Assembly: GCA_053919585.1 (NCBI GenBank)
Contig: CM132792.1
DNA length: 64,000 bases
Source of the DNA: Euprymna scolopes
Taxonomy: Eukaryota
Direction: 5' to 3' (one strand)
The notes under the pieces were generated by a model. It was not told the origin of the DNA. It ran no database searches and was given only the letters and a program-made list of their open reading frames with translations. Made by a program: the position numbers and the translations under genes. Below are positions 15,740-57,838 of this stretch, piece by piece (positions within the stretch are counted from its first letter, which is position 1; each line of letters begins with the position of its first letter).

Positions 15740-16981
15740 ATGGACGCTCCAAAGATCCAGAAAAATAAAGATGAGGTTAGAAAAAAGAAAGATGTTAAAG
15801 TGAACGCTTCTTCACGCGTCCAGAAAAAAAATGGTCGTGTTAAAAAGCCCCTGAATGCTTATTTCGTCTGGTGCAAACAGTTCAGAAAACAAATACGTGA
15901 ACAAAATCCGACCATCACCATTATTGAAGCCAATGCCCTTCTCGGGAAAATATGGAGTGAAATGTCAGCGGAACAGAAAAAACCTTACTTCAAAGAGGCA
16001 GAACTTATCAAGAAACAACACCAATTAGATTATCCCGATTTCGAGTTTAAGTCGAAACCACGTGTTAAAAACCCCAACAGGTTCCATGCCTACCCCTATC
16101 AACAACATGTGGTGTATTACATACAAACGCTGCCAAGCAAAGATAGAATGCCTCAGGAATATTTTCATGAATCCACTTTCTTTGAGGTAACAAACAAAGC
16201 GGTAACTCAAGAAAATTCTCCTCACGTGGTCGGTACAGATGAAAGCATCAGATCCACGTTTTCTGAAATGCCATCCGAGACACGCGAGAATCTTTCCAAC
16301 AAGAACAGCGTATGTGTTCCGCTGCCAGAGACCGAACTCGACAAGGAGTCACGGGCATTCAGTAATGAACACCTATACAAAAGGCAGTCGAAATACAATC
16401 CCGTAATCATGACGGCTGGCCAAGACAACGATAGAGAGGTGATGGAATTTTCGTCTACTCACTCCAAATCCGAGAGCATTTCTGAAACGCTTCCTCACGC
16501 ACCTGAGCAAAACGGGGTTTATTTTCATCCTGAATGTTACGGTCATGAATGCAATAATAGTAAGTCACAAAATTTTACAGCTTTAACTTACTCGCAAGCT
16601 AAAAATAAACTAATAGAAAAGTTTCAATTCTTAGACGAGAATTCGCCTATAAATACACCAATATGCAACGCAAATATTTTTCTTGGTGTTGAGAACGATA
16701 AAAATACGACGTTTTCTGAAGAAACTCTTGAAGAAGCCCAACATCTCACTTTTGTTGAAGATTATATTATCAATGCAACACCAAATACCGAGGAACATAT
16801 CAACCAATGCACCGAAATGTTCCCCAACACGAAATCTGATATTTTGAACGATGACGATTTCGAATCCCTTAATTGTCTGGAAGATTTGGTCTCGACTTTC
16901 TGCTTAGGTGAAGATTTCCCATCTACAATGTTTTGGAACGAAGAAGGTATTAATTTGGAAGACTTTGCAGAACTGTTGTGA
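15740..16981 (+). CDS. Divergent Sox-type (SoxH/SOX30-like) HMG-box transcription factor, copy 1 (413 aa, single ORF)
   Basis: HMG box at aa ~31-108 (NGRVKKPLNAYFVW...LGKIWSEMSAEQKKPYFKEAELIKKQHQLDYPDF), basic N-terminus, acidic C-terminus (…EEGINLEDFAELL*), caaaATG start context, uninterrupted 1242-bp ORF in AT-rich DNA. Confidence 0.92.
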   Translation: MDAPKIQKNKDEVRKKKDVKVNASSRVQKKNGRVKKPLNAYFVWCKQFRKQIREQNPTITIIEANALLGKIWSEMSAEQKKPYFKEAELIKKQHQLDYPDFEFKSKPRVKNPNRFHAYPYQQHVVYYIQTLPSKDRMPQEYFHESTFFEVTNKAVTQENSPHVVGTDESIRSTFSEMPSETRENLSNKNSVCVPLPETELDKESRAFSNEHLYKRQSKYNPVIMTAGQDNDREVMEFSSTHSKSESISETLPHAPEQNGVYFHPECYGHECNNSKSQNFTALTYSQAKNKLIEKFQFLDENSPINTPICNANIFLGVENDKNTTFSEETLEEAQHLTFVEDYIINATPNTEEHINQCTEMFPNTKSDILNDDDFESLNCLEDLVSTFCLGEDFPSTMFWNEEGINLEDFAELL

Positions 16982-17572
16982 TTTTGTATATCGATTGATA
17001 ATGCAATCGATTAATTTGATCACATGATCGATGTTATCGTTTGATATCATGTGTATATATTTTCTATTGTTCAATTTGTTTAATGTTATTTATTGATTTT
17101 AATTTTTTTCATTAGTGATTTTAAAAAAGTATGACTGTCAGGAATCTCGGATAACGAAAGATAAACAGCTAAGCAAGCATACATCATATGCAAAAATTTT
17201 ACCAACGATCAAACATCATTTTTAGAGTATTGATTTATTTAACGAGCAGTTTTAACAAGTTTGTTGTTACAATAATAATAAACATAATCGGATGTGTGTG
17301 TGTGTGTTAATTTAAAACGAAACGAAACCAACGACTATACATTAAACGTACAGAAACAGTAGATACATACGAAAGAAACACTTTATAAATTAGTTTCTCG
17401 TTATTTTGTTTATTAATTATTGAATTTCTTTTTTTAATAATTCTGTAAAATAAATTTTATTTCAATAAAATGTTTCATGTAACGTTAAATTTGTTTGTTT
17501 ATTTATTGCAAAATGTAAGTTTCATCCGACAAGGCCGGATTAAGCTTACAGAGAGACATTTTTTTGTTTTCT

Positions 17573-18052
17573 GTCCTCGATGTTTTCACATGCGACAAAT
17601 GTAAAATTTCCTGTGATTTTGAACTTTCTTGATTGAAGCAATTTCGTTCCGGTTCATTTAACTTTTCCATTTTTTTCGTTTCAACAATGTTAAATTATTT
17701 TTATTCTTGATTATTAACTTTTTCGGAACACTTATCTATGGGCAGTTTTTATCCAACTTCAATTTTATTTATATACACATTTTCTTATCACTTGAAATTT
17801 GGTGCATGTTGCCAGTGTGAGTGAGAAATGTTCAAACATTGCGCTCTACGATATAAGCACAAATTTTATAACCTAATTCTAAACTTACCCTGTACCTAAC
17901 TCTAAATTGCAGTCGTGGTTAGTGGTAAAAAATTGTTAACTACCCCAAAATGCAAGAATGGCATTTACATTGAATTCAGACTAAAATGACTCCAGTCAAG
18001 AAAGTTCAAAACGGTCAGATTCATTATGTAGCCTGAATCAAAATAAGAGGTC
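17573..18052. mobile_element. Old MITE-like element with ~100-bp degenerate inverted ends (present in every unit)
   Basis: ttttgaactttcttgattgaag (~17617) is the inverse of ctccagtcaagaaagttcaaaa (~17990); similarity extends outward to gtcctc / gaggtc. Confidence 0.55.
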
Positions 18053-18162
18053 ATTTAAGGAGACTGTGATATTTTGGTCACAGCTCGTTAAATAAGTCGC
18101 TTTGATAAATAGAGATAAAAGATACCTTTGTAAACAGTACAATCCCCACGGTGGTCCCTAAG

Positions 18163-18241
18163 TACTGGGTGGGACAGAGCATCTTCTTATTTAAATAATT
18201 TAAGTCATTTAAATAAGCAAGTTGCTCTGCCTCACCCTGTA
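18163..18241. mobile_element. ~80-bp palindromic Tc1/mariner-type MITE (also 31703-31781, ~45727-45805, 59016-59094)
   Basis: ta-ctgggtgggacagagca.cttcttatttaaat...atttaaataagcaagttgctctgcctcaccctg-ta: TA-flanked CAGGGTG-type TIRs making up the whole element. Confidence 0.7.
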
Positions 18242-18389
18242 TAATGTTAACCAAGGTAAACATCAAAACAACCAATGTCATTCATTGTTGGATCAAAATT
18301 TGTTATATATATATAACGTAATAATCAGTAATAAATATATAATTTCTCATATTTAATATTGATAATTATGTTTATATAGGAAAAGGCTG

Positions 18390-19740
18390 TAAGCACCGCC
18401 AAAACTGTGGGGGCAGGTAAGTACTTTTTGACGGACCGTCTTTTTAAAAATCTACCAAAAATCAGATAATTATCCGATCAATACGAAATTTTCAGCGATT
18501 ATTAGGAGAAGAATGAACTTTATAACAGTGTACTTATTTTTCATAAACGATATTTATATATATTTTTTTTTTTGCTTACAAACCCCCCCTTGTTTTGAAG
18601 TGGTACAAATATGCTTAAAATAATCATCTGAAACTGAACACAACATATTGTGTTGTTGTAAGGGACAGAATTATAGATTAAAAAAAATAAATAAATGAAT
18701 TGTTTGCATACCTTATTTGGACGTTTGAATATCAGAACTTCGATTGTGTTTAATTATCCCGCTTTTGAGTTTTAAGTGTGAAATTCGGTGAATATGTTAA
18801 GTAAAATAATTAATTTAAGTTAAGCAAAACAAAAAAATTTTTTTTTTAATATTTATACGAAAAAAGCCATTTTAAAATTTTTGATAAATAAATTAACAAT
18901 TTTTTTTAGCGAGCCGAATAATGCATGACCATTATTAAACAGGGCATGCTTTGAATAATCGATACAAAAAAAAAAAAAATTCGATAAATATTGTGCCCTT
19001 TGTGTTAAAAATAGCATCATTTTTTTCGATCCCGTTTGAAAACGTTTGCCGCCTTTCGACTACGGTGCACCAAACGCGCTGAAATAATTTTTTTTTTATT
19101 CTGCTTTAAATTGCCCCTCCCCCCATTTTGGGGAGCCTGACCCCCACACACATACACATTAAAAACCAAACTCATACAAATGGTCACCCATCTGGTACTG
19201 GCCAGCCTCAGCTTAATAATACATTGAAATTTTCGTCACTGAAAAATAAGTTTTTTTGGCCTGTTTGGTCTTCCATAGTTTTCTTCTTATCAAACGCAAA
19301 CGTAAACAGAGTCGATCTAGACTCTAGATCGACGCGAAATATCTGGTTACCTATATGAATAAGTGGCATTATTTGAAATTTAGGTACTTATATTATAATA
19401 TTTTTGCATATTCTCTTAGAAAATCATCCTAAATCTTAGTTAGACAATAAATAAATAAATGAATTATTTCAAAAACCTTTTTTTTTTTAAATATTTATGT
19501 ACGTTTTTTGTGCAAGACAAAAAATGTCAATTGTAAACTTTTTGGGAAATTTTAACATTTAAAATTTAATTAAAAATAGTAGAAAAAGTTTTACATTATT
19601 CTGTTTTCTATATGATAAAATTCAGGGTTTTATCTTTCTGGAAAAAAAAAGTTACTCAGAAATAATGGAGTTTAATAAATGTAATTTCGTTTTAAAAAAC
19701 AACAACAACTTGATTTTGCGGCCATTTTTGGCGGTGCCTA
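18390..19740. mobile_element. Non-autonomous TIR DNA element (1351 bp), unit 1 copy
   Basis: TIRs ta(a/g)gcaccgccaaaa / ttttggcggtgccta flanked by ggctg / ggcta. Absent from unit 3 (empty site aggaaaaagctaatg at ~45942-45956). Confidence 0.8.
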
Positions 19741-19812
19741 GGCTAATGTATTAAAGGCTAAATAAAATATTTACTTGGAAATGGTTGATGGATAAAAAAA
19801 TAGATTTTAGAA

Positions 19813-21440
19813 GGAGCAAAGACAGAGGTACGTCCAGTGCTGGACTACTATGAATTAAATGGCTCCATGGAAGCGTTCACTGCCAACGTAGAAGTGTGCG
19901 CACAAACGCTAAGACAATGATGGTGATGAGGAGCGGATGTGTCACTTCTGAATTTTTGAAAGGCTTTTGTCTCTGTTGCGTCTGCACTAACATTTTTTGG
20001 ACTTCAGTTTAGTATGCAAGGATCCGGTGTGACTAAAAGATGGAGCAGGAGTTTCTGGGCTTGCAGGTCTGGAAAAAAAACAACATCCTCCAACGGAAAC
20101 AAGGAAATCAGATTCCGGAAATCCCCGGTGTGCTGACATGTCGGTGTGTGTTTTCCCTGTGTGGGAAACTTGTTTGTCATTTTTCTGTGTGTGGATGGTC
20201 ACAGTCAAGCGCCTGATGACTGCAGCAACCAAGGGATGGGAGGATGACATCAAACACCCCGATTTCTGTCACATATTATTGGAGATGCTGAGCAGGGTAC
20301 AAGAGCAGGACCCTGTTAAAGGAGACTGGAGCAGGAGCAGCAGCAAGATTACAGTCTGGCTAGATGTGAGTTCCATAGCTACAGGAATGGCATAGAAGGC
20401 AAGCGGTAATGTCATCGAAGTACAACGTTGGCTGTGTCTGACCAATGATTCTAGGCATATAAATTTAGCTGAGCTTGACGTGATGCTCAGAGTGGGAGGG
20501 GCAACTGAGCCCTCGAATTGGTCAATCATTTGGTGTGTATGCAACGGTGGATTTCTGACACCCTGTCCAGGAAGGCATGGGTAAATACAAAGGCTGCTTG
20601 TGAGATGCTGGTTAGGCAACACTTATGAACCATGCAATCTAGTGAAAGAGTATGAATTGACCATGGTTGAATTGACCATGGATGTGATGGATGTAAGAAG
20701 ACCTTTTCACCAGATTACTGCTAAAGGAAGGAGGATCCGTGTTTGAAAGATGTTCACTAGTGGAAGGAGGACTACACCAAGACCATGTAGTCAATCTTCA
20801 TTATCAAAGCGGACATCCGGGTGTGAATGAACTCTGTACTTTGTCAGTTTAATTGACCCACAAGTGTCCAACGAGAATATGAAATCTGTTGTAAAAGCCT
20901 GTGAAATCTGTCAGCTAATCGATCTGGCACCTGATCGCTGAATAACATGGAAAGTAAATGCGAAAAGCAAAACTGAAGCAGACTGGCAGTGGATATAACT
21001 AACTACAACAGCAAAACTTTTTTGACGCTTGCGGTCCATCTAGGTTTGCATCTTACAATAAGAAAGTGTCTTCCTTGAACGAGGCTCACTAATGAAGATA
21101 CTAATTGACAATTGCATTGCATTTGCTAGTGAGGAGTTCACGAGATTTGTGGATAGTTGGATTGTGCATCTGTAGTTTTGACGTGCCTGTTCGGTGAGTG
21201 GGCACAGGATCATCGAACAAAACAACCGGCAAGACTGCTGGTATAACTTCACCCAAACGATTACGTTTCACTTTCCACAGCACCAGCCAATGCATTGCAC
21301 AGGTACCATGTAAGGAATTGTTTGGGTTAAAAACTTGCATGGCAGGTGTATGACAAGATATGTCATACACCTACAGATATATATGCATCACTGAGATATT
21401 CAGCTTGTGATTAGTGTGGGTTGTTGGTGTGCTCCGTCAC
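19813..21440 (+). mobile_element. Gypsy pol relic (RT start / RNase H / integrase pieces), unit 1; homologues ~33050-35190, 46600-48600, 61340-62380
   Basis: LIPLMAVVQEQRQKVRPVLDYYELN (RT N-terminus, unit 4 ORF), WLDVSSIATG..INLAELD (RNase H), GHPGV...CEICQ (integrase Zn finger); riddled with stops. Confidence 0.75.
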
Positions 21441-21945
21441 TTTAAAGTTTTATGACCAGCGATGCAATTGCAATCATCATTTGATGATAAAAACGAATCA
21501 GATTCTGAGACAGTGAGCTATCACTTTGGTTTAAGCCAGCTCCATCAGTCAGTGATTTAGATATTAGCAGCCTCCTGGGACAGTNNNNNNNNNNNNNNNN
21601 NNNNNNNNNNNNNNNNNNNNNNNNNNNNNNNNNNNNNNNNNNNNNNNNNNNNNNNNNNNNNNNNNNNNNNNNNNNNNNNNNNNNNNNNNNNNNNNNNNNN
21701 NNNNNNNNNNNNNNGCCAGAAGACTAGACACAAGATCAGTTGTGTTTTTGAGAAGTGCACTAGGATAAGCGTACTCTGGCCTACAAAAAGTGAATGAGTT
21801 GCCCCATTGCTTAGCAATAGAGTAAGCCTTTCTCAAAGAGATGTAAAGCCTGAGAGATTAAACTTTCTAAGACTAAACAGAGCCAGACCTCAGTAAGACA
21901 ACAACAAGACTATTGTAACACTGATTTATATCTTAAATCTATTAT

Positions 21946-21983
<38 letters not shown>

Positions 21984-22379
21984 TATACATGCATGTTTTC
22001 TTACCTTATAATACAATGTTGGGAAGAAGAAAGAATTCCAAATAGATGTGTAATTTCTTATTTTTTCTTGAACTCAGATTCACCTGGGTTAGTTAAACTG
22101 GTTCCTTCAAATGCATTTACTGCATCTTACACAAAAGCTGACCAAGGTTGGCAATCCATTGTTGGCAATAATTTTTTAACACTTTCAACAGCCTGTCACA
22201 GTTCCAATGGCGAATACCATAGATTGACAAACTTGGAATCAGTTCAGTATCTTGCTGACCTGTTCTAAGCCACTTTTTAAGCTGGCTGCTGCATCATTCA
22301 TCAAACCTTAAGGAGGAACCGGTTGATGGCTTCTCTAATGGAGGCTTCTCTTGCTGAAAGTGGTGGGTGTGACCAGCTC

Positions 22380-23860
22380 AATGAAGGTGATTATGTGGCA
22401 CTACGTTCAGACTGACATCAGTCAGTCAGGACACACACAGGATGCGACACACACAGCAATGACGTGTGATGCAAGCATCATCACTGCGTACAAGAATAAG
22501 TGTTACCATGGTGACTGCAATAACTACTGTGGAATTTTTCTCCTTAGTTTTATTGGAAAAATCTTTGGTTGAATCGTCCCCAACAGCCTGCAGTTGCTTA
22601 CAGAGCATGTATATGTTAGTAACAATATGAGCTTATAACAAGAAGATCAACTGTCGACATTACTTTTGTTTTGCCTATGAGAGTTCCAGGACAAAATGTT
22701 ACAAACATAGGCAATTGCTGTACATCACCTTCATCGACCTGACTAAAGCCTTTGACCTTATCACCAGAAAATGACATTTCATTTGTTCAAGAGAATTGCA
22801 TGTTACTTCAGACTCCTAAATGTATCACATTTATTCATAAGGACATGCAGTACAATACGATGACTCTTTTAAAAACCCTTTCCCAATCAAGAGTGAAACA
22901 GGGTTGTACAATTGCTTCAACAGTCTTTAGCATCTTCTTTTTTCTGCTGTTTTCCTACACATTCAACAAGTCAGAGGATGGAGTGAATCTCCATACCAGA
23001 GACAGTGGCAGAATTTTCAACCTTGGTCACGTTTTAACTAAGAACAAAATGCATGACGTGAAATATATGTGAGATGCTCTTTGCTGATGATGCAGCGCTG
23101 ATGAGACACTCTGCTGAATCATTGCAGTGACTCATCCATTGCTTTGTGCATGCATGTAAAAGACTAACATCTTTGACCAATATGTATGCATTAACCTAAA
23201 CATCAATATTGAGGCCGTCAAAAAATGTACATACATCGGCTCCAATGTATCCAGGAATATCTCTCTGGACGAAGAAATCACCAAACATTTAAGCAAATTA
23301 GCAACAAATATGGCTAGCTTGATAAAGAGTGTCTCAAACAACAATATGCAAATCAACAATACTCAGCAAACAGCTCTAGCAGGACAACATCTCAAAGAAA
23401 ATCATCTTTGATCAGGCAAATAACCCGTGCATGTTTGCTCTGCTTACCTAACAACGACTTTGGCAGCTTTGCTGTGCCAGGCAAAAAGATACTGAGAAGA
23501 GCCGAAAGGATCTTCTTTATAGTGAGATCATATTAGATCAGTAGGAAATCATGTCATACGCTATAAGGATGTTTGTAAGCAAGACATAAGGGTAGTTGGC
23601 ATCGACCCAGCAGGCTGGGAGTTTGCAGCTGCTGAAGAAGAGCTGTAAAGACACGTTCCAAGAGGAGTGAAAAGAGGAGAGACCAGCAGAGGAGAGAGAA
23701 CACATATTGCACAGATTGCAACTCTTACATCTGTTGCGTCTGTAACTCAGCCTGTCAATCCAAGATAGGCTTGCATGTTTCAGAAGATGCTGCAATTTAC
23801 CAACAGACGAATCTGAGGTGCAGAACACCATTGTCTTCTGAAACAGATGGATGCAAACAA
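22380..23860 (+). mobile_element. RTE LINE relic, unit 1; homologues ~36130-37610, 49150-50440, 63300-64000
   Basis: DASIITAYKNKCYHGDCNNYCGIFLLSFIGKIF, FIDLTKAFDL, RVKQGCTIASTVF, MLFADD. Confidence 0.85.
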
Positions 23861-24479
23861 AAATGCTCGATGATGTTCTGTCATGTCCGTCCATCAAGAC
23901 AAGGTTGGGAATATGGACATGACCTTATCAATTGTGAAAAACGCGGAAGTTACAAATTTAGTTCGATTTAGAGATGAGTCTAAAAAATGTGATTAAAACA
24001 AGAAATAACGATGCAGAAGAGCAACAGATTCAACTCATTTATTTAGATATTAAATTATATTCCTCACATGTTGAACTTGATGTTAATTCAACTCATTAAA
24101 GATGTGGAGGGTGTTGAAGTCTTTGCTGACAATTCATATATTTCCCATTTCCAAAACTATGTAATGTGTAATGCTGCTTTGTGGTAGATATTAATATTAT
24201 GTGGATAGTGCAGCATCAGTAGGATTGAGAAATAGAAAATCTACAAAGCAAAAATAAAAATCTGAATAAGACAGCAAAAAACAAAACAACAAAAAAAACG
24301 ATAATTAGTTAAACAGAATGTCGATAGGAAAGCAAAAACTGTTATGTAGTATAGTTAGTGAATCGGTGAGGACATTGATATGTCTGCCTGACCTGGTAGA
24401 CTGTGTTGGTTTAGGTGAGACGCCGTTGCTGAAATAAACTGTATGCGTAGGCTACGTTGGTTTCTGACTTGTGGTATCG

Positions 24480-25360
24480 TCGTGGGCTTTGTGTAACGTG
24501 TCTGAAGAATACCGTGCACTCCGTCATTCTGGATAATTACATGAGTCCATGTGTTAATATTCTGGGGAACATGAGTAGTGACATTTTTGTGGTCTGGCTT
24601 TAATATTCAGAAGTTTTGCCATTTATTCCTTCACGCGAGAGGTGTAGCTCATTGGGTATGGCATCTGCTCTGGTGTAGCTGGTGTGTCCATCTCTCTGGG
24701 TAAGGTCAGTGAGGTTCCGTAAACCATTTCGTTGGAAGACAAGCTGATGTCCATTTTAACAATCGATTGAATACCGAGAAGCACAAAAGGCAGGCATTCT
24801 ATCCATCTGATGGGGTCAGAGTATGCTTTAAGACATGCCTTTAACTGTCGATGCAAGGTGCTAAATCATGCCGTTTGCTGTTGGGTGATAAGACATAGTG
24901 CATATGTTTCTGCATCCAAGCAGGCGGGACAGCTCGAAAAAAAGATGTGAGTCAAATTGTCAGTTGTAATGGTATTAGGTATGCCATAACGGGATATCCA
25001 ATGTATAATGAGTGCTTTGGTGACAGTTTAAGCAGAAATATCTCTAATCGGGAATGGCTTCAGGCCATCTCGAATACCTGGTGGATGTGGACCCATTATG
25101 TCTATGTGGATATGCTGAAAACGAGCCTTGGGGGTTAAAAACGTTGCAGGAGGACTCTAAATGTGACATTGAATCTTGGACTTCTGGCAAGGAAGACAAC
25201 GCCGTGTCCATTCTCGTATATCTCGATTGATGGCAGTCCATACATAACGTGACATCACCAATTTCTTAGTCAAATGGACGCCAGGATGTGACAGACTCTG
25301 CAGCTTTGTAAACACAACTCGCTTATGCTTGAGGGGCACATATGGACGCTCGTGACCATA
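24480..25360 (-). mobile_element. Gypsy integrase relic, minus strand, unit 1; homologues ~38400-38830 (internally deleted) and 52200-53090
   Basis: LSHPGVHLTKKLVMSRYVWTAINRDIREWTRRCLPCQKSK (integrase Zn-binding domain) and HRQLKACL...WIECLPFVLLGI...EMVYGTSLTLP (integrase core C-terminal part). Confidence 0.88.
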
Positions 25361-26040
25361 TCACTTCATTGGAGAAACGTAAAGAAAATTGCTTGAACAT
25401 TAGGTTTAGCGATCCTGTTGCAGTTTCAAATCACTACCTCTATTTTTAATTCCCCCCCCCCTTTTCATCATCGATTTCGCTACACATGTCGGAATTCAAA
25501 TATATCAAACAAAACGCCAATAATTCAGGCAATTGACTTTTTACTTTTTAGACGACTGATGCTACCAGTCACGTTGACCGAATCTTCCAGCCAAAGGATT
25601 TCCAGCAGTGGCAGCCGTCTTAGCAGCAGGTCAAACATCTCTTATAAGGTCTAAACAACCAGCACTTATCAAGGCTAATAAGTTTTTCACTAATGCGATT
25701 CACTACTGCTTGCCTTCTGAGACCCACCAGCAGCAAACTTCACTTTCACCTCTGGCCTGCAACCTCGCTCCTCCGATCTGCAACCTCGCATGCACCTGGT
25801 TCCCTACTGACCATTCGTTCCTTATCACTGACCCTACGTCCTCACTGTCGTCCATTCCTTAACACTGACCCCACATTCTCAGTGTCCACTGACCATTCAA
25901 GATCGCCCTGACGGCCAGCCGATCGTCCAGACCCAGCGAGAAACCCTAAACCAGAGTACCTGGTCCAGCCCTCCAGACCAAGCCTCCGGTAACATGCGAC
26001 CTTCCGGACAACTAGCATCCAGCTCATACAATTTTTCGCA

Positions 26041-26229
26041 TTTTTTTTTTTTTTTACCACTTATCAAGACTAAGAGGCCACTCGAGGATAACGGTTAAAA
26101 AGTGTACAGTAGAAATTGGACAATATAGTAATCGTTAGTAAATGGAAATTCTGTAAATTTGTTAACAAGTGAAACGGCTAATCAGGAACTTGTTTACGTT
26201 AGACTTGAAGACAATCATATTGTAGTCAG
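26041..26229 (-). mobile_element. Short antisense 3' end of the CR1-like LINE (also ~39508-39696, 53852-54041)
   Basis: Poly(T) followed by the reverse complement of ~8840-9015. Confidence 0.88.
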
Positions 26230-26434
26230 ATTTCTTCGCAAATAAAAGGCGAACCTTCGCCTTTAACCAAACAACCTGTGTCGGTCATTCTTCTTGCCTT
26301 TTTGCTGTTTACTTTTGCCCGTGTCTACATTGTTAGTTGTAGGGTCGATTGTCCCAGTATAACCGGCCCCGCAGCAATCCAATTCTTTGCATCCTATTGA
26401 TTTCGCTCAAACTCCTTAAGCGCCGCGCTATTTG

Positions 26435-26468
<34 letters not shown>

Positions 26469-28256
26469 CACTAGCATTTTCTTCCAATAATAAACTTTTA
26501 GCTTAATTGAGTTTATCTCTATTTTTATCACAAGTATTTTTATATCTTTCAATAAATCAGTTTTAGTTGGATCGAGTTTATAGATTTGAAAATTGTAAAA
26601 TTCTTTATTTTTACTTAAATTTTACTTGAATTGTGAATCATTAATTAATTTAAATTTAACTCGTTTAATATCGTTTAATATATATAATTTAGCCTTTTCA
26701 TCGAATTAGTAACTAAAATAATATTTTGAATTATGATGCGAGATGAATTACTTCCCTTTAACCGTTTCTTTAAGTTATTTTAAATAATTTAACTCGACTC
26801 TTTTTTTTTTTAATGGCGAAGTCGGTATTTCATGTTTTCAGCGTTAAGTGCTGACATAAAATAAAAAGAATAATTTTTTTGTCACTTGATAATGATGTAT
26901 ATATCGGCAAAAGTATGGGCTGAAATCAAATATTAATAATAAATAATATTACATTATATATTATATTCACACATAATCGGGCCAGAAATCTTCAACTCGC
27001 ATAAGGCCTGGAGGTGGAATCAGCTGAGTTTGAATGAGGGTTAATCAACAAATTTATCGAATATGTAATAAATGTTTTAATCGTTTAACCTTAGCTTAAA
27101 ATGCCAAGAAAAGTTGAGAAACTCGGCACCCGACATAAACATGTATTCTAGCTAGTATCGATTGATCGATCGATGCCTCCGTTCAGTCTCAAGAGACAAT
27201 GGACACCCCTATAAGGTAGCTGCGCATGGAATTGGGAGGCAAGGGCTACGCAATCTCAAGAGTGACGGGAACAATGGCGAGAAAGCGAAGAACACACACA
27301 GCATCTGGAAATGCTAAATGGTCAATCACAATTATGAAACGGATTTGAATCAAAATTGATATAAGGATTCTAGACGTAAATGTTCAGTTGCATTATATAA
27401 TCATTTTTTATCTTCGTAAGGGACCATACATAACTTGACTTCACGGAATAAAAACAGAGCCAATCCAAGACAGCAGAGCGAGTAAATACACTGGCTCAAT
27501 ATCACTCCAGATAGATTTTTATGAACAAAATTGGATTATCTTAAAACTTTACTTCAATTTCAAAGTCGAATATCATGGATGAAAAAAGTCACGTTTAAAA
27601 CATTTTCAATCCACGTAACGTAAAAACCACTCCACGAGCTGACGCCGTGCTAAATAAATTGAATAATAATTTTTAAAAAAAAAGCGTTATAATTCAATTC
27701 TGGTTTGTTTGAGCTTACATTCAAATGTATACAGACGTGTGGAATGAAATACAAACCTGACGTTCGGATCAACTGTGAAACTGCAGCAAAGCTAAGAAGC
27801 ATTTAATCTTTAAAAATATTTTAGCAAATTATTAATTTAAAATCAAATATCTATTCTGTTTCTATTCTCGGCCAAAGAAGGAAATATTCTTCTAGATTAA
27901 GAAATTTAGTCCCTTTTTCTAAGTTGAATTTTTCCCTACAATAAAACACATTCCATTTTTAACTGCTTTGATCGCAAGGCAAGTATATACTACTATGCAA
28001 GCATTCGATTTTTTCGACGGATTTTGTTTAATATGTATTGATTGTAAATTTTGGAAATAAGTTATATTTTTTGATTAATCATGCGTTTTTTAAAGCTTTC
28101 TTCACCATTTTTTAAAAAATTTCTTCGTCTCTCTTTATCCCCCCTCTCTCTCTTTCTCATATTCCTATCTCTAGCTTCTCTCTTCTCCCTCTCTTGCTTT
28201 CTGTTCCTTTTCCCTCTTTCTCCTTTTTCGACGCGCTATTCGTTTTAACCACATTA

Positions 28257-28833
28257 CGTCCAAGGATGGAATACTGTTGCCACATCTGACAGGAGCTGCT
28301 AGAAAGGACTTGGCCTGCCTTGATAGAGTTCAAAATAGACTTCGTAGCCTCGTAGGAGATGTCCTTTTCTCTTCCTTGGAACCTCTATCTCACAGAAGAG
28401 ATGTTGCGAGTTTGTCTCTGATGTATCGTTATTTTCATGGAAAGTGTTCGACTGAGCTTCAATCTATGGTCCCCCCTCGCCAAACTTTCACAAGAAACAC
28501 TCGTCTAGCTGTAAACACTATCAATAATTCCCCCCACTCTTTATCTGTGCCTAAACCTAAACGTAGATTCCATGAACAAAGCTTCTTTCTTAGAACTGCA
28601 CGCCTGTGGAATTGTCTTCCGTTTTCCTGCTTTCCGGCTGACTACAATATGGTTGTCTTCAAGTCTAACGTAAATAAGTTCTTGATGAGCCGTTCCATAT
28701 AAGTTATAAAATCTACCAAAATTTCATTACTAATGATTACTATATTGTCCAATTTCTAATGTACACTCTTTAACCCTTATCCTTGAGTGGCCTCTTGGCC
28801 TTGATAATGTGGTGATGCCTATGTAAAAAAAAA
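28257..28833 (+). mobile_element. 5'-truncated CR1-like LINE (577 bp) inserted ~450 bp upstream of HMG copy 2
   Basis: Matches 8469-9039, poly(A) end, atta duplicated at 28253-28256 and 28834-28837. Empty site in copies 1 and 4. Confidence 0.93.
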
Positions 28834-29281
28834 ATTATCTCTAATTCCTTCATCCTCCTCTTCCTCACCACTCTCCTCCTACTCCTCTCTCTCTCTCTCT
28901 CTTTCTCTTTCGCCTTTTTCTTTCTCCTCCTCCTCATTCTCATATCATAAAAACCTGTTTCCTCTTCTCAATTTTCTCCTTTCTCCCCCCTCCTCCTACT
29001 TTCTCTCTTCACTTCTCTCTCACTCTCTTGACCACTCTCTTTGTTAATCATTTACGGCATTCGCTTCCTCCCACTACTTCTCTTATCATTAGCTGTTTTT
29101 ATTCGAGACGCCAAGTCATTTTCTGTTTGAGACGCTACCCAAAAGATACACGCTACCATAACAAGTAAACAAGATCCACAGTGATTAACTTTTATTTTAA
29201 TTAATAAGTGAGAAAAGATCTTTTTGGGCTATTCTTTCGCAAAAAAGTTAAAAAAAAAAAAAAAAAAAAAATTCTTTCAAA

Positions 29282-34218: not shown

Positions 34219-34270
<52 letters not shown>

Positions 34271-39901: not shown

Positions 39902-39945
<44 letters not shown>

Positions 39946-46900: not shown

Positions 46901-48767
46901 AGAGACGGGGGCCTCCTGATTCCTTTAATGGCGGTCGTCCAGGAGCAAAGACAGAAAGTACTGTGAATTAAATGGCTCCATGGAAGCGTTCACTGCCAAC
47001 GTAGAAGTGTGTGAACAAACGCTAAGACAATGATGGTGATAAGGAGAGGATGTGTCACTTCTGAATTTTTGAAAGGCTTTGGTCTCTTGTTGTGTCTGCC
47101 CCAACATTTTTCGGACTTCAGTTTAGTATGCAAAGATCCGGTGTGACTAAAAGATGGAGCAGGAGTTCTGGGCTTGCAGGTCTGGAAAGAAAGCAACATC
47201 CTCCGATGGAGACAAGGAAATCAGATTCCGGAAATCCCCGATGTGCTGACATGTCGGTGTGTGTTTTCCCTGTGTGGGAAACTTGTTTGTTATTTTTCTG
47301 TGTGTGGATGGTCACAGTCAAGCGCCTGACGACTGCAGCAACCAAGGGATGGGAGGATGACATCAAACACCGCTATTTCTGTCACATATTATTGGAGATG
47401 CTGAGCAGGGTACAAAAGCAGGGCCCTGTTAAAGGAGACTGAAGCAGGAGCGGCAGCAAGATTACAGTCTGGCTAGATGTGAGTTCCATAGCTACAGGAA
47501 TGGCATAGAAGGCAAGCGGTAATGTCATCGAAGTACAATGTTGGCTGTGTCTGACCAATGATTCTAGGCATATAAATTTAGCTGAGCTTGACGTGATGCT
47601 CAGAGTGGGAGGAGCAACTGAGCCCTCGAATTGGTCAATCATTTGGTGTGTATGCAACGGTGAATTTCTGACACCCTGTCCAGGAAGGCATGGGTAAATA
47701 CAAAGGCTGCTTGTGAGATGCTGATTAGGCAACAGTTATGAACCATGCAATCTAGTGAAAGAGTATGAATTGACCATGGTTGAATTGACCACGAGTGAAT
47801 TGACCATGGATGTGATGGATGTAAGAACATCTTTTCACCAGATTACTGCTAAAGGAAGGAGGATCCGCACTTGAAAGATATTCACCAGTGGAAGGAGGAC
47901 TACACCAAGACCAGGTAGTCAATCTCCATTATCAAAGCGGACATCCGGGTGTGAATGATCTCTGTACTTTGCCAGTTTAATTGACCCACAAGTGTCCAAT
48001 GAGAATATGAAATCTGTTGTAAAACCCTGTGAAATCTGTCAGCTAATCGATCTGGCACCTGATCGCTGAATAACATGGAAAGTAAATGCGAAAAGCAAAA
48101 CTGAAGCAGACTGGCAGTGGATATAACTAACTACAACAGCAAAACTTTTTTAACACTTGCGGTCCATCTAGGTTTGCATCTGAGAGTAAGAAAGTGTCTT
48201 CCTTGAACGAGGCTCACTAATGAAGATACTAATTGACAATGGCATTGCATTTGCTAGTGAGGAGTTCAAGAGATTTGTGGATAGTTGGATTGTGCATCTG
48301 TAGTTTTGACGTGCCTGTTCGCTGAGTGGGAACAGGATCATCGAACAAAACAACCAACAAGATTAGGCAGGACTGCACAGAATTTGATGCGGTTTGCTGG
48401 TATAACTTCACCCAAAAAGATTAGGTTTCACTTTCCACAGCACCAACCAACGCATTGCACAGGTACCATGTCAGGGTGTAGAGCATTTTTTGGGTAAAAA
48501 ACTTGCATGGCAGGTGTATGACAAGATATGTCATACACCTACAGATACATACGCATCACTGAGATATTCAGCTTGCGATTAGTGTGGGTTGCTGGTGTGC
48601 CCCGTCACTTTAAAATTTTATGGCCAGCGATGCAATTGCAATCATCATTTGATGATAAAAGCTAATCAGATTCTGAGACAGTGAGCTATCACTCTGGTTT
48701 ACGCAAGCTCCATCAGTCAGTGATTTAGATATTAGCAGCCTCCTGGGTCCGTCGGGACTCCCTGCTC

Positions 48768-48815
<48 letters not shown>

Positions 48816-51800
48816 TATCTACCTCCTTGCCAGAAGACTAGACACAAAATCAGTTGTGGTTTTGTAGAAGTGCACTAGGATAAGCGTACTCTGGCCTACA
48901 AAAAAGTGAATGAGTTGCCCCATTGCTTAGCAATAGAGTAAACCTTTCTCAAAGAGATGCAAAGCCTGAGAGATTAAACTTTCTAAGACTAAACAGAGCC
49001 AGACCTCAGTAAGACAACAAGACTATTGTCACACTGATTTATATCTTAAATCTATTATACAGCACACACTGAACTGTGTAAGCCACGTTGCTGCATCATT
49101 CATCAAATCTTAAGGAGGAACCAGATTGACTTGCTGAATGTGATGGGTGTGACCAGCTCAGTGAAGGTGATTATGTGGCACTACGTTCAGACTGACATCA
49201 GTCAGCCAGGGCACACACAGGATGCGTCACACATAGCAATGACGTGTGATGCAAGTATCATCACTGCGTACAAGAATAAGTGTTACCATGGTGACTGCAA
49301 TAACTACTGTGGAATTTTTCTCCTTAGTTTTATTGGAAAAATCTTTGGTTGAATCGTCCCCAACAGCCTGCAGTTGCTTACAGAGCATGTATATGTGAGT
49401 AACAATATGAGCTTATAACAAGAAGATCAACTGTCGACATTACTTTTGTTTTGCCTATGAGAGTTCCAGGACAAAATGTTACAAACAGAGGCAATTTCTG
49501 TACATCATCTTCATCGACCTGACTAAGGTCTTTGACCTTATCACCAGAAAATGACACATTCAACAAATCAGAGGATGGAGTGAATCTCCATACCAGAGAC
49601 AGTGGTAGAATTTTCAACCTTGGCCACATTTTAACTAAGAACAAAATGCATGACGTAAAATATATGTGAGATGCTTTTTGCTGATGATGCACTGCTGATG
49701 AGACACTCTGCAGAATCATTGCAGTGACTCATCCGTGCATGCATGTAAAAGACTATCTTTGACCAATATGTATGCATCCTTGACCATAACCAAAACACCA
49801 ATATTGAGGCTGTCCAAAAATGTACATACATCGGCTCCAATGTATCCAGGAATATCTCTCTGGACGAAGAAATCACCAAACATTTAAGCAAATTAGCAAC
49901 AAATATGGCTAGCTTGATAAAGAGTGTCTCAAACAACAATATGCAAATCAACAATACTTAGCAAACAGCTCTAGCAGGACAACATCTCAAAGAAAATCAT
50001 CTTTGATCAGGCAAATAACCCGTCCATGTTTGCTCTGCTTACCTAACAACGACTGTGCCAGGCAAAAAGATACTGAGAAGAGCCGAAAGGCTCTTCTTTA
50101 TAGTAAGATCATATTAGATCAGTAGGAAATCATGTCATACGCTATAAGGATGTTTGTAAGCAAGACATAAGGGTAGTTGGCATCGACCCAGCAGGCTGGG
50201 AGTTTGCAGCTGCTGAAGAAGATCTGTAAAGACACATTCCAAGAGGAGTGAAAAGAGGAGAGACCAGCAGAGGAGAGAAAACACATATTGCACAGATTGA
50301 ACTCTTACATCTGTGGCATATGTAACTCAGCCTGTTAATCCAAGATAGGCTTGCACATTTCAGAAGATGCTGCAATGCACCAACGGACCAATCTGAGGTG
50401 CAGAACACCATTGTCTTCTGAAACAGATGGATGCAAACAAAAATGCTTGATGACGTTCTGTCATATCCGTCCACAAGACAAGGTTGGGAATATGGACATG
50501 ACCTAATCAACTGAGAAAAAAGTGGATGTTACAAATTCAGTTCGATTTAGAGATGAGTCTAAAAAAATGTGATTAAAACAAGAAATAACGATGCAGAAGA
50601 GCAACAGATTCAACTCATTTATTTACATATTAAATTATATTCCTCACATGTTGAACTTATTAATTCAACTCATTAAAGATGTGGGGGGGGGTTGAACTCT
50701 TTGCTGACAATTCATATATCTCCCATTTCCAAAACTATATAATGTGTAATGCTGCTTTGTGGTAGATATTAATATTATGTGGATAGTGCAGCATCAGTAG
50801 GATTGAGAAATAGAAAATCTACAAAGCAAAAAATAAAAATCTGAATAAGACAGCAAACAACAAAACAACCAAAAAACGGTAATTAGTTAAACAATGGAAT
50901 ATATTTGTTTCTTTGTGTTTTTACTATGTTCTTTGCCCCATATATAAATTTATCATTTCCTTTAAAAATGGTATTGCCTATAGAAATGGTATTGCCTATG
51001 CAAACATGAATGTACACCCGAAACAATATTATACATAGCAAATTTTTTAATATATGCGATTTCTTCTTAAATACAAGCTCACTGATGTGTTTGCTGTTTG
51101 TGATATGCAACTTTCGTAGAACAGTTTTTGAAGTTTCAACCTTGGTCCTATCATCGCATTTGTTATGATGTGCGACCAGATCAACGTTGAGTGTCACCAC
51201 TGCTACTACAGTGAACATTTAAAACGGCAGTTGTCGCCAGTGTTACTATATAAATGAAACTAGGTTTTTCTAACCTCAACGTAAACAAAATATTAAAACA
51301 GGTATCAAAATCAGCATTAAAACGAAGTCGAATATAAAAATTAATAATATTGGTTTTTATTTAATATAGCAAGGAATAATGAATCATGCTTTTATTGTTT
51401 ACGTATTTTAATGTATTTTTAAAACAGCCTGATAAGGTTTAGATTAAAATATGCAGTAAAGAACAAGAGAGAGAAATCTTTCTCTGACTGAGGCAGAATG
51501 TCATTTTTGCAGAATACATGTCTCTTTCTTTTTTTTTAGGTAAAGCAAGATAAAGTTTGTTATTTTAATCGGTTCCATGAATATATCTGATGCAATGCAG
51601 AGTTATATATTTTCTTTTGGTAATTAATCCAGGTAGATTTACGGGGTCCAGGTGTAAGAGGCACAAAATCATAATAATGGTTTTAACGTCGGGAGACAGA
51701 GCAAGGTTTGTGTGCTTGTTAACACTTCAACGGAAATCTGACTCGACTGACTGGGTTTCATGCGCAGTGCCTTTTTTTATAGGTGCAGACTGGCTCCAGC

Positions 51801-54800
51801 GAAAAATGTTAGAAAAATCTTTTGGAAATTTGCTTTCTTTGAATGCCGATTGGATGAAAAGCCAACGCCTCTGTCACATAGGGATGTTTTCAACTATGTC
51901 GGTGTGAAAAGACAGAATGTTTGTTTTTATGCCCACAGAATGGTGTGTGTGTAGAAAACAGATGCACACACAACAAGAACGCTCCTTGTCCAGCGACGTT
52001 TAATGTTTGTGGTGAGTCGCTACAGTACCCCACTATTAGACAGAATGTCGATAGGAAAGCAAAAACTGTTACGTAGTATAGTTAGTGAATCGGTGAGGAC
52101 ACTTGATATGTCTGCCTGACCTGGTAGACTGTGTTTGTTTAAGTGAGTCGCCGTTGCTGAAATAAACTGTATGCGTAGGCTACGTTGGTTTCTGACTTGT
52201 GGTATCACCGTGAGCATGTGTAAGGTGTCTGAAGACTACCGTGCACTCCGTCATTCCGGATGAATACATGAGTCCATGTGTTAATATTCTGGGGAACATG
52301 AGTAGTGACATTTTTGTGGGCTGGCTTTAATATTCAGAAGTTTTGACATTTATTCCTTCACACAGGAGGTGTAGCTCATTGGGTATGGCATGTGCTGCGG
52401 TGTAGCTGGTGTGTCCATCTCTCTGGGTAAGGTCAGTGAGGTTCTGTAAACCATTTCGTCAGAAGACAAGCCGATGTCCATTTTAACAATGGATTGAATA
52501 CCGAGAAGCACAAAAGCCAGGCATTCTATCCATCTGATGGGGTCAGAGTATGCTTTAAGAGATGCCTTTAACTGTCGAGGCAAGGCGCTCAATCATGCTG
52601 TTTGCTGTTGGGTGATAAGACATAGTGCATATGTGTCTGCATCCAAGCAGGTTGGACAGCTCGAAAAAAAGATGTGAGTCAAATTATCAGTTGTAATGGT
52701 ATTAGGTATGCCATAACAGGATATCCAATGTATAATGAGAGCTTTGGCGACAGTTTAAGCAGAAATATCTCTAATCGGGAATGGCTTCAGGCCATCTCGA
52801 ATACCTTGTGGGAGTGGACCCATTATGTCTATGTGGATATGCTGAAAACGAGCCTTGGGGGTTAAAAACGTTGCGGGAGGACTCTTGATGTGCCGTTGAA
52901 TCTTGGACTTCTGGCAAGGAAGACAACCCCGTGTCCATTCTCATATATCTCTATTGATGGCAGTCCATACAAAACGTGATGTCACCAATTTCTGAGTCAA
53001 ATGGACGCCAGGATGTGATAGACTCTGCAGCTTTGTAAACACAACTCGCCTATGCTTGAGGGGCACATATGGACGCTCGTGACCATATTACTTCATTGGA
53101 GAAAAGTAAAGAAAATTGCTTGAACGTTAGGTTTAGCGATCCTGTTGCAGTTTCAAATCACCACCTCCATTTTTAATTCTTTCCCCAACCCCTTTTCATC
53201 ATCGATTTCGCTACACATGTCGGAATTCAAATATATCAAACAAAACGCCAATAATTCAGGCAATTGACTTTTTACATTTTAGACAACTGATGCTACCAGT
53301 CACGTTGACCGAATCTACCAGCCAAAGGATTTCCAGCAGTGGCAGCCGTCTTAGCAGCAGGTCAAACATCTCTTATGAGGTCTAAACAACCAGCCCTTAT
53401 CAAGGCTAATAAGTTTTTCACTAATGCGATTCACTACTGCTTGCCTTCTGAGACCCACCAGCAGCAAACTTCACTTTCACCTCTGGCCTGCAACCTCGCT
53501 CCTCCGATCTGCAACCTCGCATGCACCTTGCTCCTTTGCTCTGCAACCTCGCCTGCATCTGGTTCCCTACTGACCATTCGTTCTTTAAAACTGACCTCTA
53601 CGTTCTCAGTGTTGTCCGTTCCTTATCACTGACCCCACGTCCTCAGTGTCGTCCATTCCTTAACACTGACCCACATTCTCAGTGTCCACTGACCGTTCCA
53701 GATCGCCCTGACGGCCAGCCGATCATCCAGACCCAGCGAGAAACCCTAAACCACACTACGTTTAGAGAACCTGCTCCAGCCCTCCAGACCAAGCCTCCGG
53801 TAACATGCGACCTTCCGGACAACTAGCATCCAGATCATACAATTTTTTGCATTTTTTATTTTTTTTTACCACTTATCAAGACCAAGAGGCCACTACAGGA
53901 TAACGGTTAAAAAGTGTACAGTAGAAATTGGACAATATAGTAATGGTTAGTAAATGGAAATTCGGTAAATTTGTTAACAAGTGAAACGGCTAATCAAGAA
54001 CTTGTTTACGTTAGACTTGAATACAATCATATTGTAGTCAGCTTTCTTCGCAAATAAAAGGCGAACCTTCACCTTTAACCAAACAACCTGTGTCGGTCAT
54101 TCTTCTTGCCTTTTTGCTTTTTACTTTTGCCCGTGTCTACCTTGTTAGTTGTAGGGTCGATTGTCCCAAGATAACCGGCCCCGCAACAATCCAATTCTTT
54201 GCATCCTATTGATTTCGCTTGAACTCNNNNNNNNNNNNNNNNNNNNNNNNNNNNNNNNNNNNNNNNNNNNNNNNNNNNNNNNNNNNNNNNNNNNNNNNNN
54301 NNNNNNNNNNNNNNNNNNNNNNNNNNNNNNNNNNNNNNNNNNNNNNNNNNNNNNNNNNNNNNNNNNNNTCCAATAATTAACTTTTAGCTTAATTGAGTTT
54401 ATCTCTATTTTTATCACAAGTATTTTTATATCTTTCAATAAATCAGTTTTAGTTGGATCGAGTTTATAGATTTGAAAATTGTAAAATTCTTTATTTTTAC
54501 TTAAATTTTACTTGAATTGTGAATCATTAATTAATTTAAATTTAACTCGTTTAATATCGTTTAATATATATAATTTAGCCTTTTCATCGAATTAGTAACT
54601 AAAATAATATTTTGAATTATGATGCGAGATGAATTACTTCCCTTTAACCGTTTCTTTAAGTTATTTTAAATAATTTAACTCGACTCTTTTTTTTTTAATG
54701 GCGAAGTCGGTATTTCATGTTTTCAGCGTTAAGTTCTGACATAAAATAAAAAGAATAATTTTTTGTCACTTGATAATGATGTATATATCGGCAAAAGTAT

Positions 54801-56599
54801 GGGCTGAAATCAAATATTAATAATAAATAATATTACATTATATATTATATTCACACATAATCGGGCCAAAAAGCTTCAACTCGCATAAGGCCTGGAGGTG
54901 GAATTAGCTGAGTTTGAGTGAGGGTTAATCAACAAATTTATCAAATATGTAATAAATGTTTTAATCGTTTAACCTTAGCTTAAAATGCCAAGAAAAGTTG
55001 AGAAACTCGGCACCCGACATAAACATGTATTCTAGCTAGTATCGATTGATCGATCGATGCCTTCGTTCAGTCTCAAAAGACAATGGACATTGGACACCCC
55101 TATAAGGTCTGCGTATGGAATTGGGAGGCAAGGGCTACGCAATCTCAAGAGTGACGGGAAACAATGGCGAGATAAGCGAAGAACACACACAGCATCTGGA
55201 AATGCTAAATGGTCAATCACAATTATGAAATGGATTTGAATCAAAATTGATATAAGGATTCTAGACGTAAATGTTCAGTTGCATTATATAATCATTTTTT
55301 ATCTTCGTAAGGGACCATACATAACTTGACTTCACGGAATAAAAACAGAGCCGATCCAAGACAGCAGAGCGAGTAAATACACGGGCTCAATATCACTCCA
55401 GATAGATTTTTATAAACAAAATTGGATTATCTTAAAACTTTACTTCAATTTCAAAGTCGAATATCATGGATGAAAAAAGTCACGTTTAAAACATTTTCAA
55501 TCCACGTAACGTAAAAACCACTCCACGAGCTGACGCCGTGCTAAATAAATTGAATAATAATTTAAAAAAAAAAAAAAGCGTTATAATTCAATTCTGGTTT
55601 GTTAGAGCTTACATTCAAATGTATACAGACGTGTGGAATGAAATACAAACCTGACGTTCGGATCAACTGTGAAACTGCAGCAAAGCTAAGAAGCATTTAA
55701 TCTTTAAAAATATTTTAGCAAATTATTAATTTAAAGCCCAACATCTATTCTGTTTATGTTCTCAGCCAAAGAAGGAAATATTCTTATAGATTAAGGAATG
55801 TAGTCCCTTTTTCTAAGCTGAATTTTTCCCTACAATAAAACACATTCCATGTTTAACTGCTTTGATCGCAAGGCAAGTATATACTACTATGCAAGCATTC
55901 GATTTTTTCGACGGATTTTGTTTAATATGTATTGATTGTAAATTTTGGAAATAAGTTATATTTTTTGATTAATCATGCGTTTTTTTAAAGCTTTCTTCCC
56001 CATTATTTTAAAATTTCTTTATCTATCTTTATCCCCCCCCCTCTCTCTCTTTCTCATATTCCTATCTCTAGCTTCTCCTCTCTCCTCCCTCTCTTGCTTT
56101 CTGTTCCTTTTCCCTCTTTCTCTTTTTTCGACTCACGCTATTCGTTTTAACTACATTATCTTTAATTCCTTCATCCTCCTCTTCCTCACCACTCTCCTCC
56201 TACTCCTCTCTCTCTCTCTCTTTCTCTTTCTCCTTTTTTTCTTTCTCCTCCTCCTCATTCTCATATCATAAAAACCTGTTTCCTCTTCTCAATTTTCTCC
56301 TTTCTCCCCCTCCTCCTACTTTCTCTCTTCACTTCTCTCTCACTCTCTTGACCACTCTCTTTGTTAATCATTTACGGCATTCGCTTCCTCCCACTACTTC
56401 TCTTATCATTAGCTGTTTTTATTCGAGACGCCAAGTCATTTTCTGTTTGAGAGGCTACTCAAAAGATACACGCTACCATAACAAGTAAACAAGATCCACA
56501 GTGATTAACTTTTATTTTAATTAATAAGTGAGAAACGACCTTTTTGGGGGCTATTCTTTCGCAAAAAAGTTAAACAAAAAAAAAAAAAATTATTTCAAA

Positions 56600-57838
56600 A
56601 TGGACGCTCCAAAGATCCAGAAAAATAAGGATCAGGTTAGAAAAAAGAAAGATGTTAAAATGAACGCTTCACGCGTCCAGAAAAAAAATGGTCGTGTTAA
56701 AAAGCCCCTGAATGCTTATTTCGTCTGGTGCAAACAGTTCAGAAAACAAATACGTGAACAAAATCCGACCATCACCATTATTGAAGCCAATGCCCTTCTC
56801 GGGAAAATATGGAGTGAAATGTCAGCGGAACAGAAAAAACCTTACTTCAAAGAGGCAGAACTTATCAAGAAACAACACCAATTAGATTATCCCGATTTCG
56901 AGTTTAAGTCGAAACCACGTGTTAAAAACCCCAACAGGTTCCATGCCTACCCCTATCAACAACATGTGGTGTATTACATACAAACGCTGCCAAGCAAAGA
57001 TAGAATGCCTCAGGAATATTTTCATGAATCCACTTTCTTTGAGGTAACAAACAAAGCGGTAACTCAAGAAAATTCTCCTCACGTGGTCGGTACAGATGAA
57101 AGCATCAGATCCACGTTTTCTGAAATGCCATCCGAGACACGCGAGAATCTTTCCAACAAGAACAGCGTATGTGTTCCGCTACCTGAGACCGAACTCGACA
57201 AGGAGTCACCGGCATTCAGTAATGAACACCTATACAAAAGGCAGTCGAAATTCAATCCCGTTACCATGACGGCTGGCCAAGACAACGATAGAGAGGTGAT
57301 GGAATTTTCGTCTACTCACTCCAAATCCGAGAGCATTTCTGAAACGCTTCCTCACGCACCTGAGCAAAACGGGGTTTATTTTCATCCTGAATGTTACGGT
57401 CATGAATGCAATAATAGTAAGTCACAAAATTTTACAGCTTTACCTTTCTCGCAAGCTAAAAATAAACTAATGGAAAAGTTTCAATTCTTAGACGAGAATT
57501 CGCCTATAAATACACCAATATGCAACGCAAATATTTTTCTTGGTGTTGAGAACGATAAAAATACGACGTTTTCTGAAGAAACTCTTGAAGAAGCCCAACA
57601 TCTCACTTTTGTTGAAGATGACATTATCAATGCAACACCAAATACCGAGGAACATATCAACCAATGCACCGAAATGTTCCCCAACACGAAATCTGATATT
57701 TTGAACGATGACGATTTCGAATCCCTTAATTGTCTGGAAGATTTGGTCTCGACTTTCTGCTTAGGTGAAGATTTCCCATCTACAATGTTTTGGAACGACG
57801 AAGGTATTAATTTGGAAGACTTTGCAGAACTGTTGTGA
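56600..57838 (+). CDS. Sox-type HMG-box transcription factor, copy 4 (412 aa)
   Basis: Intact ORF. Start placed at the homologous ATG rather than the upstream GTG (56528). Confidence 0.92.
   Translation: MDAPKIQKNKDQVRKKKDVKMNASRVQKKNGRVKKPLNAYFVWCKQFRKQIREQNPTITIIEANALLGKIWSEMSAEQKKPYFKEAELIKKQHQLDYPDFEFKSKPRVKNPNRFHAYPYQQHVVYYIQTLPSKDRMPQEYFHESTFFEVTNKAVTQENSPHVVGTDESIRSTFSEMPSETRENLSNKNSVCVPLPETELDKESPAFSNEHLYKRQSKFNPVTMTAGQDNDREVMEFSSTHSKSESISETLPHAPEQNGVYFHPECYGHECNNSKSQNFTALPFSQAKNKLMEKFQFLDENSPINTPICNANIFLGVENDKNTTFSEETLEEAQHLTFVEDDIINATPNTEEHINQCTEMFPNTKSDILNDDDFESLNCLEDLVSTFCLGEDFPSTMFWNDEGINLEDFAELL

Follow-up and report, generated by a model that had tools for sequence, protein, structure and literature searches.

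The stretch of DNA considered here (the window: 64,000 nt of the Euprymna scolopes assembly GCA_053919585.1, contig CM132792.1, corresponding to G000:C10:48670001-48734000) carries four direct repeats with a spacing of ∼13.5 kb, identified by self-comparison, each of which contains one long plus-strand open reading frame (ORF) for an HMG-box protein of the SOX type. The four gene copies were found to be mosaics of one another: all three ways of dividing four sequences two against two occur within the same ORF, in three separate blocks. This three-block pattern is real and lies far beyond chance. It probably results from unequal crossover and gene conversion between the copies of a tandem array, of which the window shows the first part.

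The four ORFs are intronless and lie on the plus strand. Copy 1 (15740..16981) encodes 413 amino acids, and copies 2 (29282..30520), 3 (42759..43997) and 4 (56600..57838) encode 412 each, counted from the shared ATG in copies 3 and 4. A private 3-nt insertion at 15807-15809 adds one serine to copy 1 alone (ASSRV versus ASRV). The four-ORF alignment contained 36 variable columns, of which 33 are substitution sites and three come from this insertion; 13 of the 36 divided the copies two against two. Copies 1 and 3 are separated from 2 and 4 at ORF nt 30, 34 and 61, copies 1 and 2 from 3 and 4 at nt 585, 656, 666, 668 and 1024, and copies 1 and 4 from 2 and 3 at nt 1086, 1090, 1092, 1131 and 1137. 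In copy-1 coordinates (plus strand), these blocks of three, five and five sites occupy 15769..15800, 16324..16763 and 16825..16876, respectively. The four copies show zero differences over a 347-nt stretch covering the HMG box (15810..16156, plus strand). Eleven substitutions are private to copy 3 among the window copies, and only unit 3 combines a G at ORF nt 1024 with an A at nt 1086.

A preliminary description of this DNA had already grouped short strings from the copies in these three ways, and a string check returned the same groups: DEV/KVN (copies 1 and 3) and DQV/KMN (2 and 4) at the N-terminus; SKYNPVI and ccgctg (1 and 2) and SKFNPVT and ccgcta (3 and 4) in the central part; and FPNT and cttaattgt (1 and 4) and FPNS and ctgaattgc (2 and 3) at the C-terminus. 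Its statement that all three partitions occur in the gene is borne out by the 13 sites, and its view that no single duplication tree explains the copies was also upheld. The tree is rejected, with the incompatible sites clustered as exchange predicts: the three partition classes form three perfect blocks (exact p = 6/72072 = 8.3e-5), and the pairwise homoplasy index (PHI) permutation test, which the same description had proposed, gave p 1e-4 for the four ORFs. The minimum spans of the tracts in the ORF are 32, 440 and 52 bp, with upper bounds of ∼650, 1000 and 700 bp, which supports its suggestion of gene conversion or unequal crossover with short tracts.

The larger array that had been suspected was found by a whole-assembly search covering 5.9 Gb in 925 records; it comprises nine units, accompanied by two relics. 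On record C10 the nine near-identical copies stand head to tail, all on the plus strand, with 95-99% identity and a period of 12.9-14.1 kb (about 13.5 kb). Their ORFs start at C10 positions 48685740, 48699282, 48712759, 48726600, 48740684, 48754826, 48768236, 48781168 and 48794343. The window copies correspond to units 1-4, and five further units follow beyond the window end, to ∼C10:48799770. Unit boundaries were placed 1470 bp upstream of each ORF start. Based on unit alignment, and for unit 1 also on self-comparison, the plus-strand units of the window are unit 1 (14270..27811, including ORF1 and a first run of N), unit 2 (27812..41288; 13,477 bp, without N), unit 3 (41289..55129, including ORF3 and a second N run) and unit 4 (55130..64000, truncated by the window end). 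Eight of the nine copies have an intact reading frame of 412-413 codons; the sole broken one, in unit 7 (C10:48768236-48769436, L009), has lost 38 nt at ORF nt 670-707, which disrupts the frame and leaves a 234-aa ORF. In the nine-copy ORF set, with 27 informative sites, 62% of site pairs were incompatible, the Hudson-Kaplan minimum number of exchanges (Rm) was 12 in 1.2 kb, and PHI gave p 0.006.

The mosaic extends over the whole repeat unit. Within the four window units, 97 two-against-two sites fell into 20 runs, versus 53.7 expected (p < 5e-5). A whole-unit data set was built from eight full units, with 7657 shared columns and 190 informative sites. Here, the fraction of site pairs in which all four combinations occur climbed smoothly with distance, from 0.08 at <25 bp and 0.20 at 25-100 bp, through 0.33 at 200-400 bp, 0.44 at 0.8-1.6 kb and 0.57 at 1.6-3.2 kb, to 0.69 at 3.2-6.4 kb and 0.80 at >6.4 kb. 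The PHI test gave p < 2e-4, and Rm indicated at least 60 exchange events. Painting with a copying model divided the units into 8-17 segments each (median 0.8 kb, quartiles 0.36-1.6 kb), and segment sizes across the unit ranged from tens of bp to several kb. On the shared columns the painting returned 44 segments, compared to 8-23 in 20 tree-like simulations. The donor was a neighboring unit in 27% of cases, versus 25% expected by chance, i.e. without any neighbor preference. Numerous 400-column windows were identical between shifting partners; units 6 and 7, for example, are identical over 2 kb. It should be noted that a longest-run test of the Sawyer/GENECONV type also gave small p values; because the 3′ flank of unit 9 has diverged so strongly, this test is confounded and was not relied on.

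Insertions and deletions provided a second class of marker. The most informative is a 571-bp, 5′-truncated long interspersed nuclear element (LINE) that ends in poly(A) and is bordered by a ∼11-bp target-site duplication. In unit 2 it lies at 28264..28834 (plus strand), 448 bp upstream of ORF2, and shows a 91% match to the 3′ end of a LINE at 8467-9036. In unit 3 it occupies the identical site upstream of ORF3 (41754..42324, plus strand), with its poly(A) seen in RNA reads at 42324. Unit comparison placed the corresponding empty sites at 15288..15304 in unit 1 and 56153..56169 in unit 4 (both plus strand), in agreement with the reported grouping of units 2 and 3 against 1 and 4. The LINE in the left flank is of the full-length type, with reverse-transcriptase ORFs at 7958-8909, and the inserted fragment is a truncated copy of this LINE. 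Across the array, units 2, 3, 6 and 9 carry the fragment and units 1, 4, 5, 7 and 8 lack it (units 5-9 being scored by colinear alignment). It is the product of a single insertion event that later spread to four non-adjacent units. The 450 bp from the LINE to the ORF differ by 0.7% among the four carriers, and the ORFs of the carriers differ from each other (proportion of synonymous differences, pS, 3.5%) as much as from those of the non-carriers. The LINE grouping is discordant with the ORF partitions.

Three further indel markers group the units in other ways. Units 1, 4 and 5 carry marker B, marker C is missing from units 4 and 6, and units 3, 4, 6 and 7 carry marker D. The large indels B and C occur in all four combinations. 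Marker D shows perfect linkage to the presence or absence of the LINE in the unit that follows; the placement of the unit borders is therefore arbitrary, and stretches of several kb are also passed on as blocks. Along the array, the structural types follow the order I, II, II, I, I, II, III, III, II, in which no block is repeated. Both the LINE fragment (42000-42324) and a dispersed repeat at 44262-44522 reach k-mer depths of 1e5-1e6 in DNA contigs and are covered by poly(A) RNA reads.

The edge of the array differs from its interior. In the last unit, unit 9, identity to unit 2 is 97-99% upstream of and across the ORF, and it falls to 77-82% from ∼220 nt past the stop codon. Two older relic copies were located 41 and 61 kb upstream of the array (C10:48624371-48646338): one has 88% identity and an open frame of 417 aa, and the other, at 86% identity, is truncated. 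Compared to the array, the relics show 84-93% identity in the ORF and 71-80% in the flanks. Interior units that are alike and edges that have diverged are what unequal exchange predicts. The left flank of the array (window positions 895-13597) contains diverged pieces of the array unit.

These observations fit a scheme in which misaligned pairing of units would have two outcomes. Unequal crossovers would produce hybrid units, change the copy number and move multi-kb blocks, and non-reciprocal gene conversion would copy stretches of tens to hundreds of bases between units. Through repeated exchange of this kind, every unit would end up composed of pieces of the others, and no single tree would hold; the interior units would be kept 95-99% alike, and array edges and older relics would escape and diverge. 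We infer that the exchange is biological in origin rather than caused by assembly, that it is divided between crossover and conversion, and that it is an ongoing process. The array may also be dynamic in the sense that its copy number changes between individuals.

The main rival to biological exchange, which we consider unlikely, is an artefact of assembly or consensus, in which reads from near-identical units were mixed in the consensus or during short-read polishing, so that the assembled copies are chimeras of fewer haplotypes. Unit identities of 95-99% are indeed the regime in which read placement fails, the array is broken up by N runs, and the private variants of copy 3 were not recovered from DNA run X2. 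In addition, the public protein collection held no exact match to the eight intact proteins or to the one relic examined with them, and hence no independent confirmation. However, the two kinds of mixing would leave different traces from those observed. Short-read polishing would randomize phase beyond ∼0.5 kb, and long-read mixing would keep phase intact below 1 kb, whereas the incompatibility rises smoothly from 25 bp to >6 kb. Polishing cannot create a LINE with its target-site duplication or indels of hundreds of bp, which are equally discordant. Eight of the nine ORFs are open over 412 codons, and base-level accuracy is therefore good. The edge unit and the relics show what would be expected of a biological process, and an uninterrupted 83.5-kb stretch spans six units.

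The two N runs inside the window units, 130 N in the spacer of unit 1 (21585..21714, 4.6 kb after ORF1) and 142 N in the spacer of unit 3 (54227..54368, 2.2 kb before ORF4), lie outside every compared ORF, and the reading frame is therefore unaffected. For the runs themselves, only the flank-to-flank distances were measured. Both have 400-nt flanks that are colinear across all other units, with 62-130 nt between the homologous flanks there, compared to the 130 and 142 N. The runs thus appear to stand for a short, length-variable stretch and not for a hidden unit; because its length varies from 62 to 130 nt between units, this stretch may well be a simple repeat. The N runs of the region have odd lengths: 185 (13598-13782), 130, 142 and 100 (137891-137990 in window numbering, outside the window).

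Public sequencing runs, none of them of the long-read kind, matched at most 47% of sampled words, and the data consisted of low-coverage Logan contigs and two poly(A) RNA runs. Local haplotypes from the middle of the ORF, including the SKFNPVT version, were recovered in DNA contigs aligned to copy 3 at 99% likeness. The k-mer depths of haplotype-specific X2 contigs were 5.5 < 28.9 < 42.8 < 76 for haplotypes with 2, 5, 6 and 9 copies, ranking as the assembled copy counts predict, which also argues against an artefact. No RNA reads over the HMG-box ORF were present in the poly(A) runs X23 and X24, where reads cover only the LINE fragments and the flanking dispersed repeat. The contigs of run X1, which had been guessed to be RNA, end in the Tn5/Nextera mosaic-end adaptor (loose ends at 42016, 42133 and 44472); this run is probably a tagmentation DNA library, e.g. 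from an assay for transposase-accessible chromatin (ATAC-seq).

Several points weigh against exchange between array copies as the explanation. Should the N runs be true gaps, the array would consist of three pieces (7.8, 32.5 and 83.5 kb), with the order and number of units based in part on scaffolding. Read support over the ORF comes only from Logan contigs of 35-306 nt, and the phase of the variants is that of the assembly. At 43173, run X2 shows the letter shared by the other copies in place of the one private to copy 3, and no contig reached ≥99% likeness to copy 3 over 43740-44000, the stretch with most of its private changes (such holes prove nothing); the copy 3 haplotype is therefore provisional. 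Concerted evolution in the strict sense would make paralogs more alike within a species than between species; the comparison here covers one genome and, outside it, a single protein, P0001, which is 45% identical and closest to paralogs on record C24. There is also no sign of GC-biased conversion, with 8 weak-to-strong and 8 strong-to-weak changes among shared derived alleles, a count of low power (as are the singletons, 12 versus 11). Finally, homogenization specific to the ORF was not evident: between LINE-bearing and LINE-free units, synonymous divergence was 2.7%, versus 3.6% in the 450 bp upstream.

A false duplication, in which units of the two parental haplotypes were placed in succession, would make some of the copies alleles and the mosaic a product of ordinary allelic recombination. 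N runs do lie inside the array, and unit 1 is situated on a 7.8-kb piece between two of them. Against this, no unit has one consistent partner, the nearest relative switching 8-17 times per unit, the order of structural types has no repeated block, and the whole-assembly search found no extra array copies on unplaced scaffolds. We therefore consider false duplication very improbable. Recurrent parallel mutation on a simple duplication tree has nothing more in its favor than the CpG context of 11 of the 60 variable sites, which together with a balanced transition to transversion ratio (31:29) means that hypermutable sites do not explain the pattern, and it can be rejected with near certainty: a tree accommodates one partition class only, so that the other 8 sites would need parallel identical hits, of which ∼0.26 are expected under generous assumptions (P = 5e-10), and the incompatible sites form perfect blocks instead of being scattered.

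Turning to the proteins affected by the exchange, the eight open copies differ by 15 synonymous and 40 non-synonymous changes, giving a ratio of non-synonymous to synonymous differences per site (pN/pS) of ∼0.5. Two singleton replacements and zero synonymous changes fall in the HMG box, while the tail contains 36 replacements and 14 silent changes (pN/pS ∼0.6). No two of the eight intact copies encode the same protein. The changes among them give no sign of positive selection, and the pN/pS values are compatible with relaxed constraint. Exchange might persist by reshuffling the ∼40 amino acid variants of the tail next to an unchanging DNA-binding box, the selected product being a panel of combinatorially different SOX-type regulators and not dosage or uniformity; we regard this idea as highly doubtful.

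Each ORF encodes a single HMG box at aa 33-100 (Pfam PF00505, E 3.9e-19), whose nearest relatives of solved structure in the PDB are SRY, SOX17, SOX18, SOX11 and SOX30 (E 1e-15 to 1e-21). For the box, the SOX30 structure 7jjk (E 3.7e-15) was no better a match than SOX17 or SOX11. SOX30-type genes act in spermatogenesis (PMC13219418). The array box resembles SOX factors such as SRY, SOX17 and SOX30 in that there is one HMG box per protein; in contrast to their signature RPMNAFMVW, which is not matched, it begins with KKPLNAYFVW. Atlas neighbors of the protein were SOX12, SOX9 and SOX17-like, with a weak score of 0.83, and a word-based homolog search came back blank. For the 300-aa tail, the sole full-length relative among 1.84 billion representative proteins was P0001, a protein of 587 aa with 45% identity, encoded on ∼3.4-kb contigs from six public runs of another species. 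Its best match in the E. scolopes genome is the paralog at C24:89.47 Mb (57%).

A sole outside relative of the tail at 45% identity, together with the genomic paralogs, places the array gene in an expanded, lineage-specific family of single-exon SOX-type genes that is represented on records C24, C34, C8, C2 and C10. The family comprises at least 30 loci in the genome, and the paralog on C2 is 76% identical to the array copies. Clusters of related intronless HMG-box ORFs were observed at C24 (∼83.0, 87.5, 89.47-89.62 and 100.2-101.8 Mb), C34:22.15 Mb and C8:101.7 Mb (loci L013-L028 and L045-L049); they lie on both strands, and some are open over 320-550 aa.

Concerted evolution by unequal crossover and interlocus gene conversion is well known from the tandem arrays of ribosomal DNA (rDNA), histone, globin and U2 genes. 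In Trypanosoma brucei, chimeric copies resulting from gene conversion were found in 21 of 47 tandem arrays (PMC1855330), and the concerted evolution of rDNA has been reviewed (PMC10462631). The array described here shares with these systems its head-to-tail units of high identity, chimeric copies and clustered incompatibility, the extension of exchange into non-coding spacers, and the greater divergence of edge units and relics. Unlike them, it consists of only nine 13.5-kb units, each with a single-exon transcription-factor gene and transposon debris, its copies have not been homogenized to identity (the eight intact proteins differ), and neighbors are not preferred as donors.

A second parallel can be drawn with the testis gene families of the mammalian X and Y chromosomes, ampliconic arrays that are kept alike by gene conversion. 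Both consist of multi-copy, lineage-specific, fast-evolving genes with exchange between copies. However, the repeats of the present array are direct and not palindromic, its ORFs lack reads in the two RNA runs examined, and there is no evidence of a sex chromosome. The idea of a sex-chromosome amplicon was dropped: the counterpart of the decapodiform Z is a small chromosome (PMC13218726), the C10 record measures 162 Mb, and nothing links the two.

The array is a well-resolved case of sequence exchange between tandem copies in a cephalopod genome. The mechanism is a textbook one, of which nothing new is revealed, and the transposon marker of single-event origin and the array edge give rough bounds on the exchange. 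For annotators, trees of these paralogs are meaningless, and copy-specific variants require proof from long reads. Finally, the array draws attention to an expanded family of intronless SOX-type genes that is specific to the lineage.

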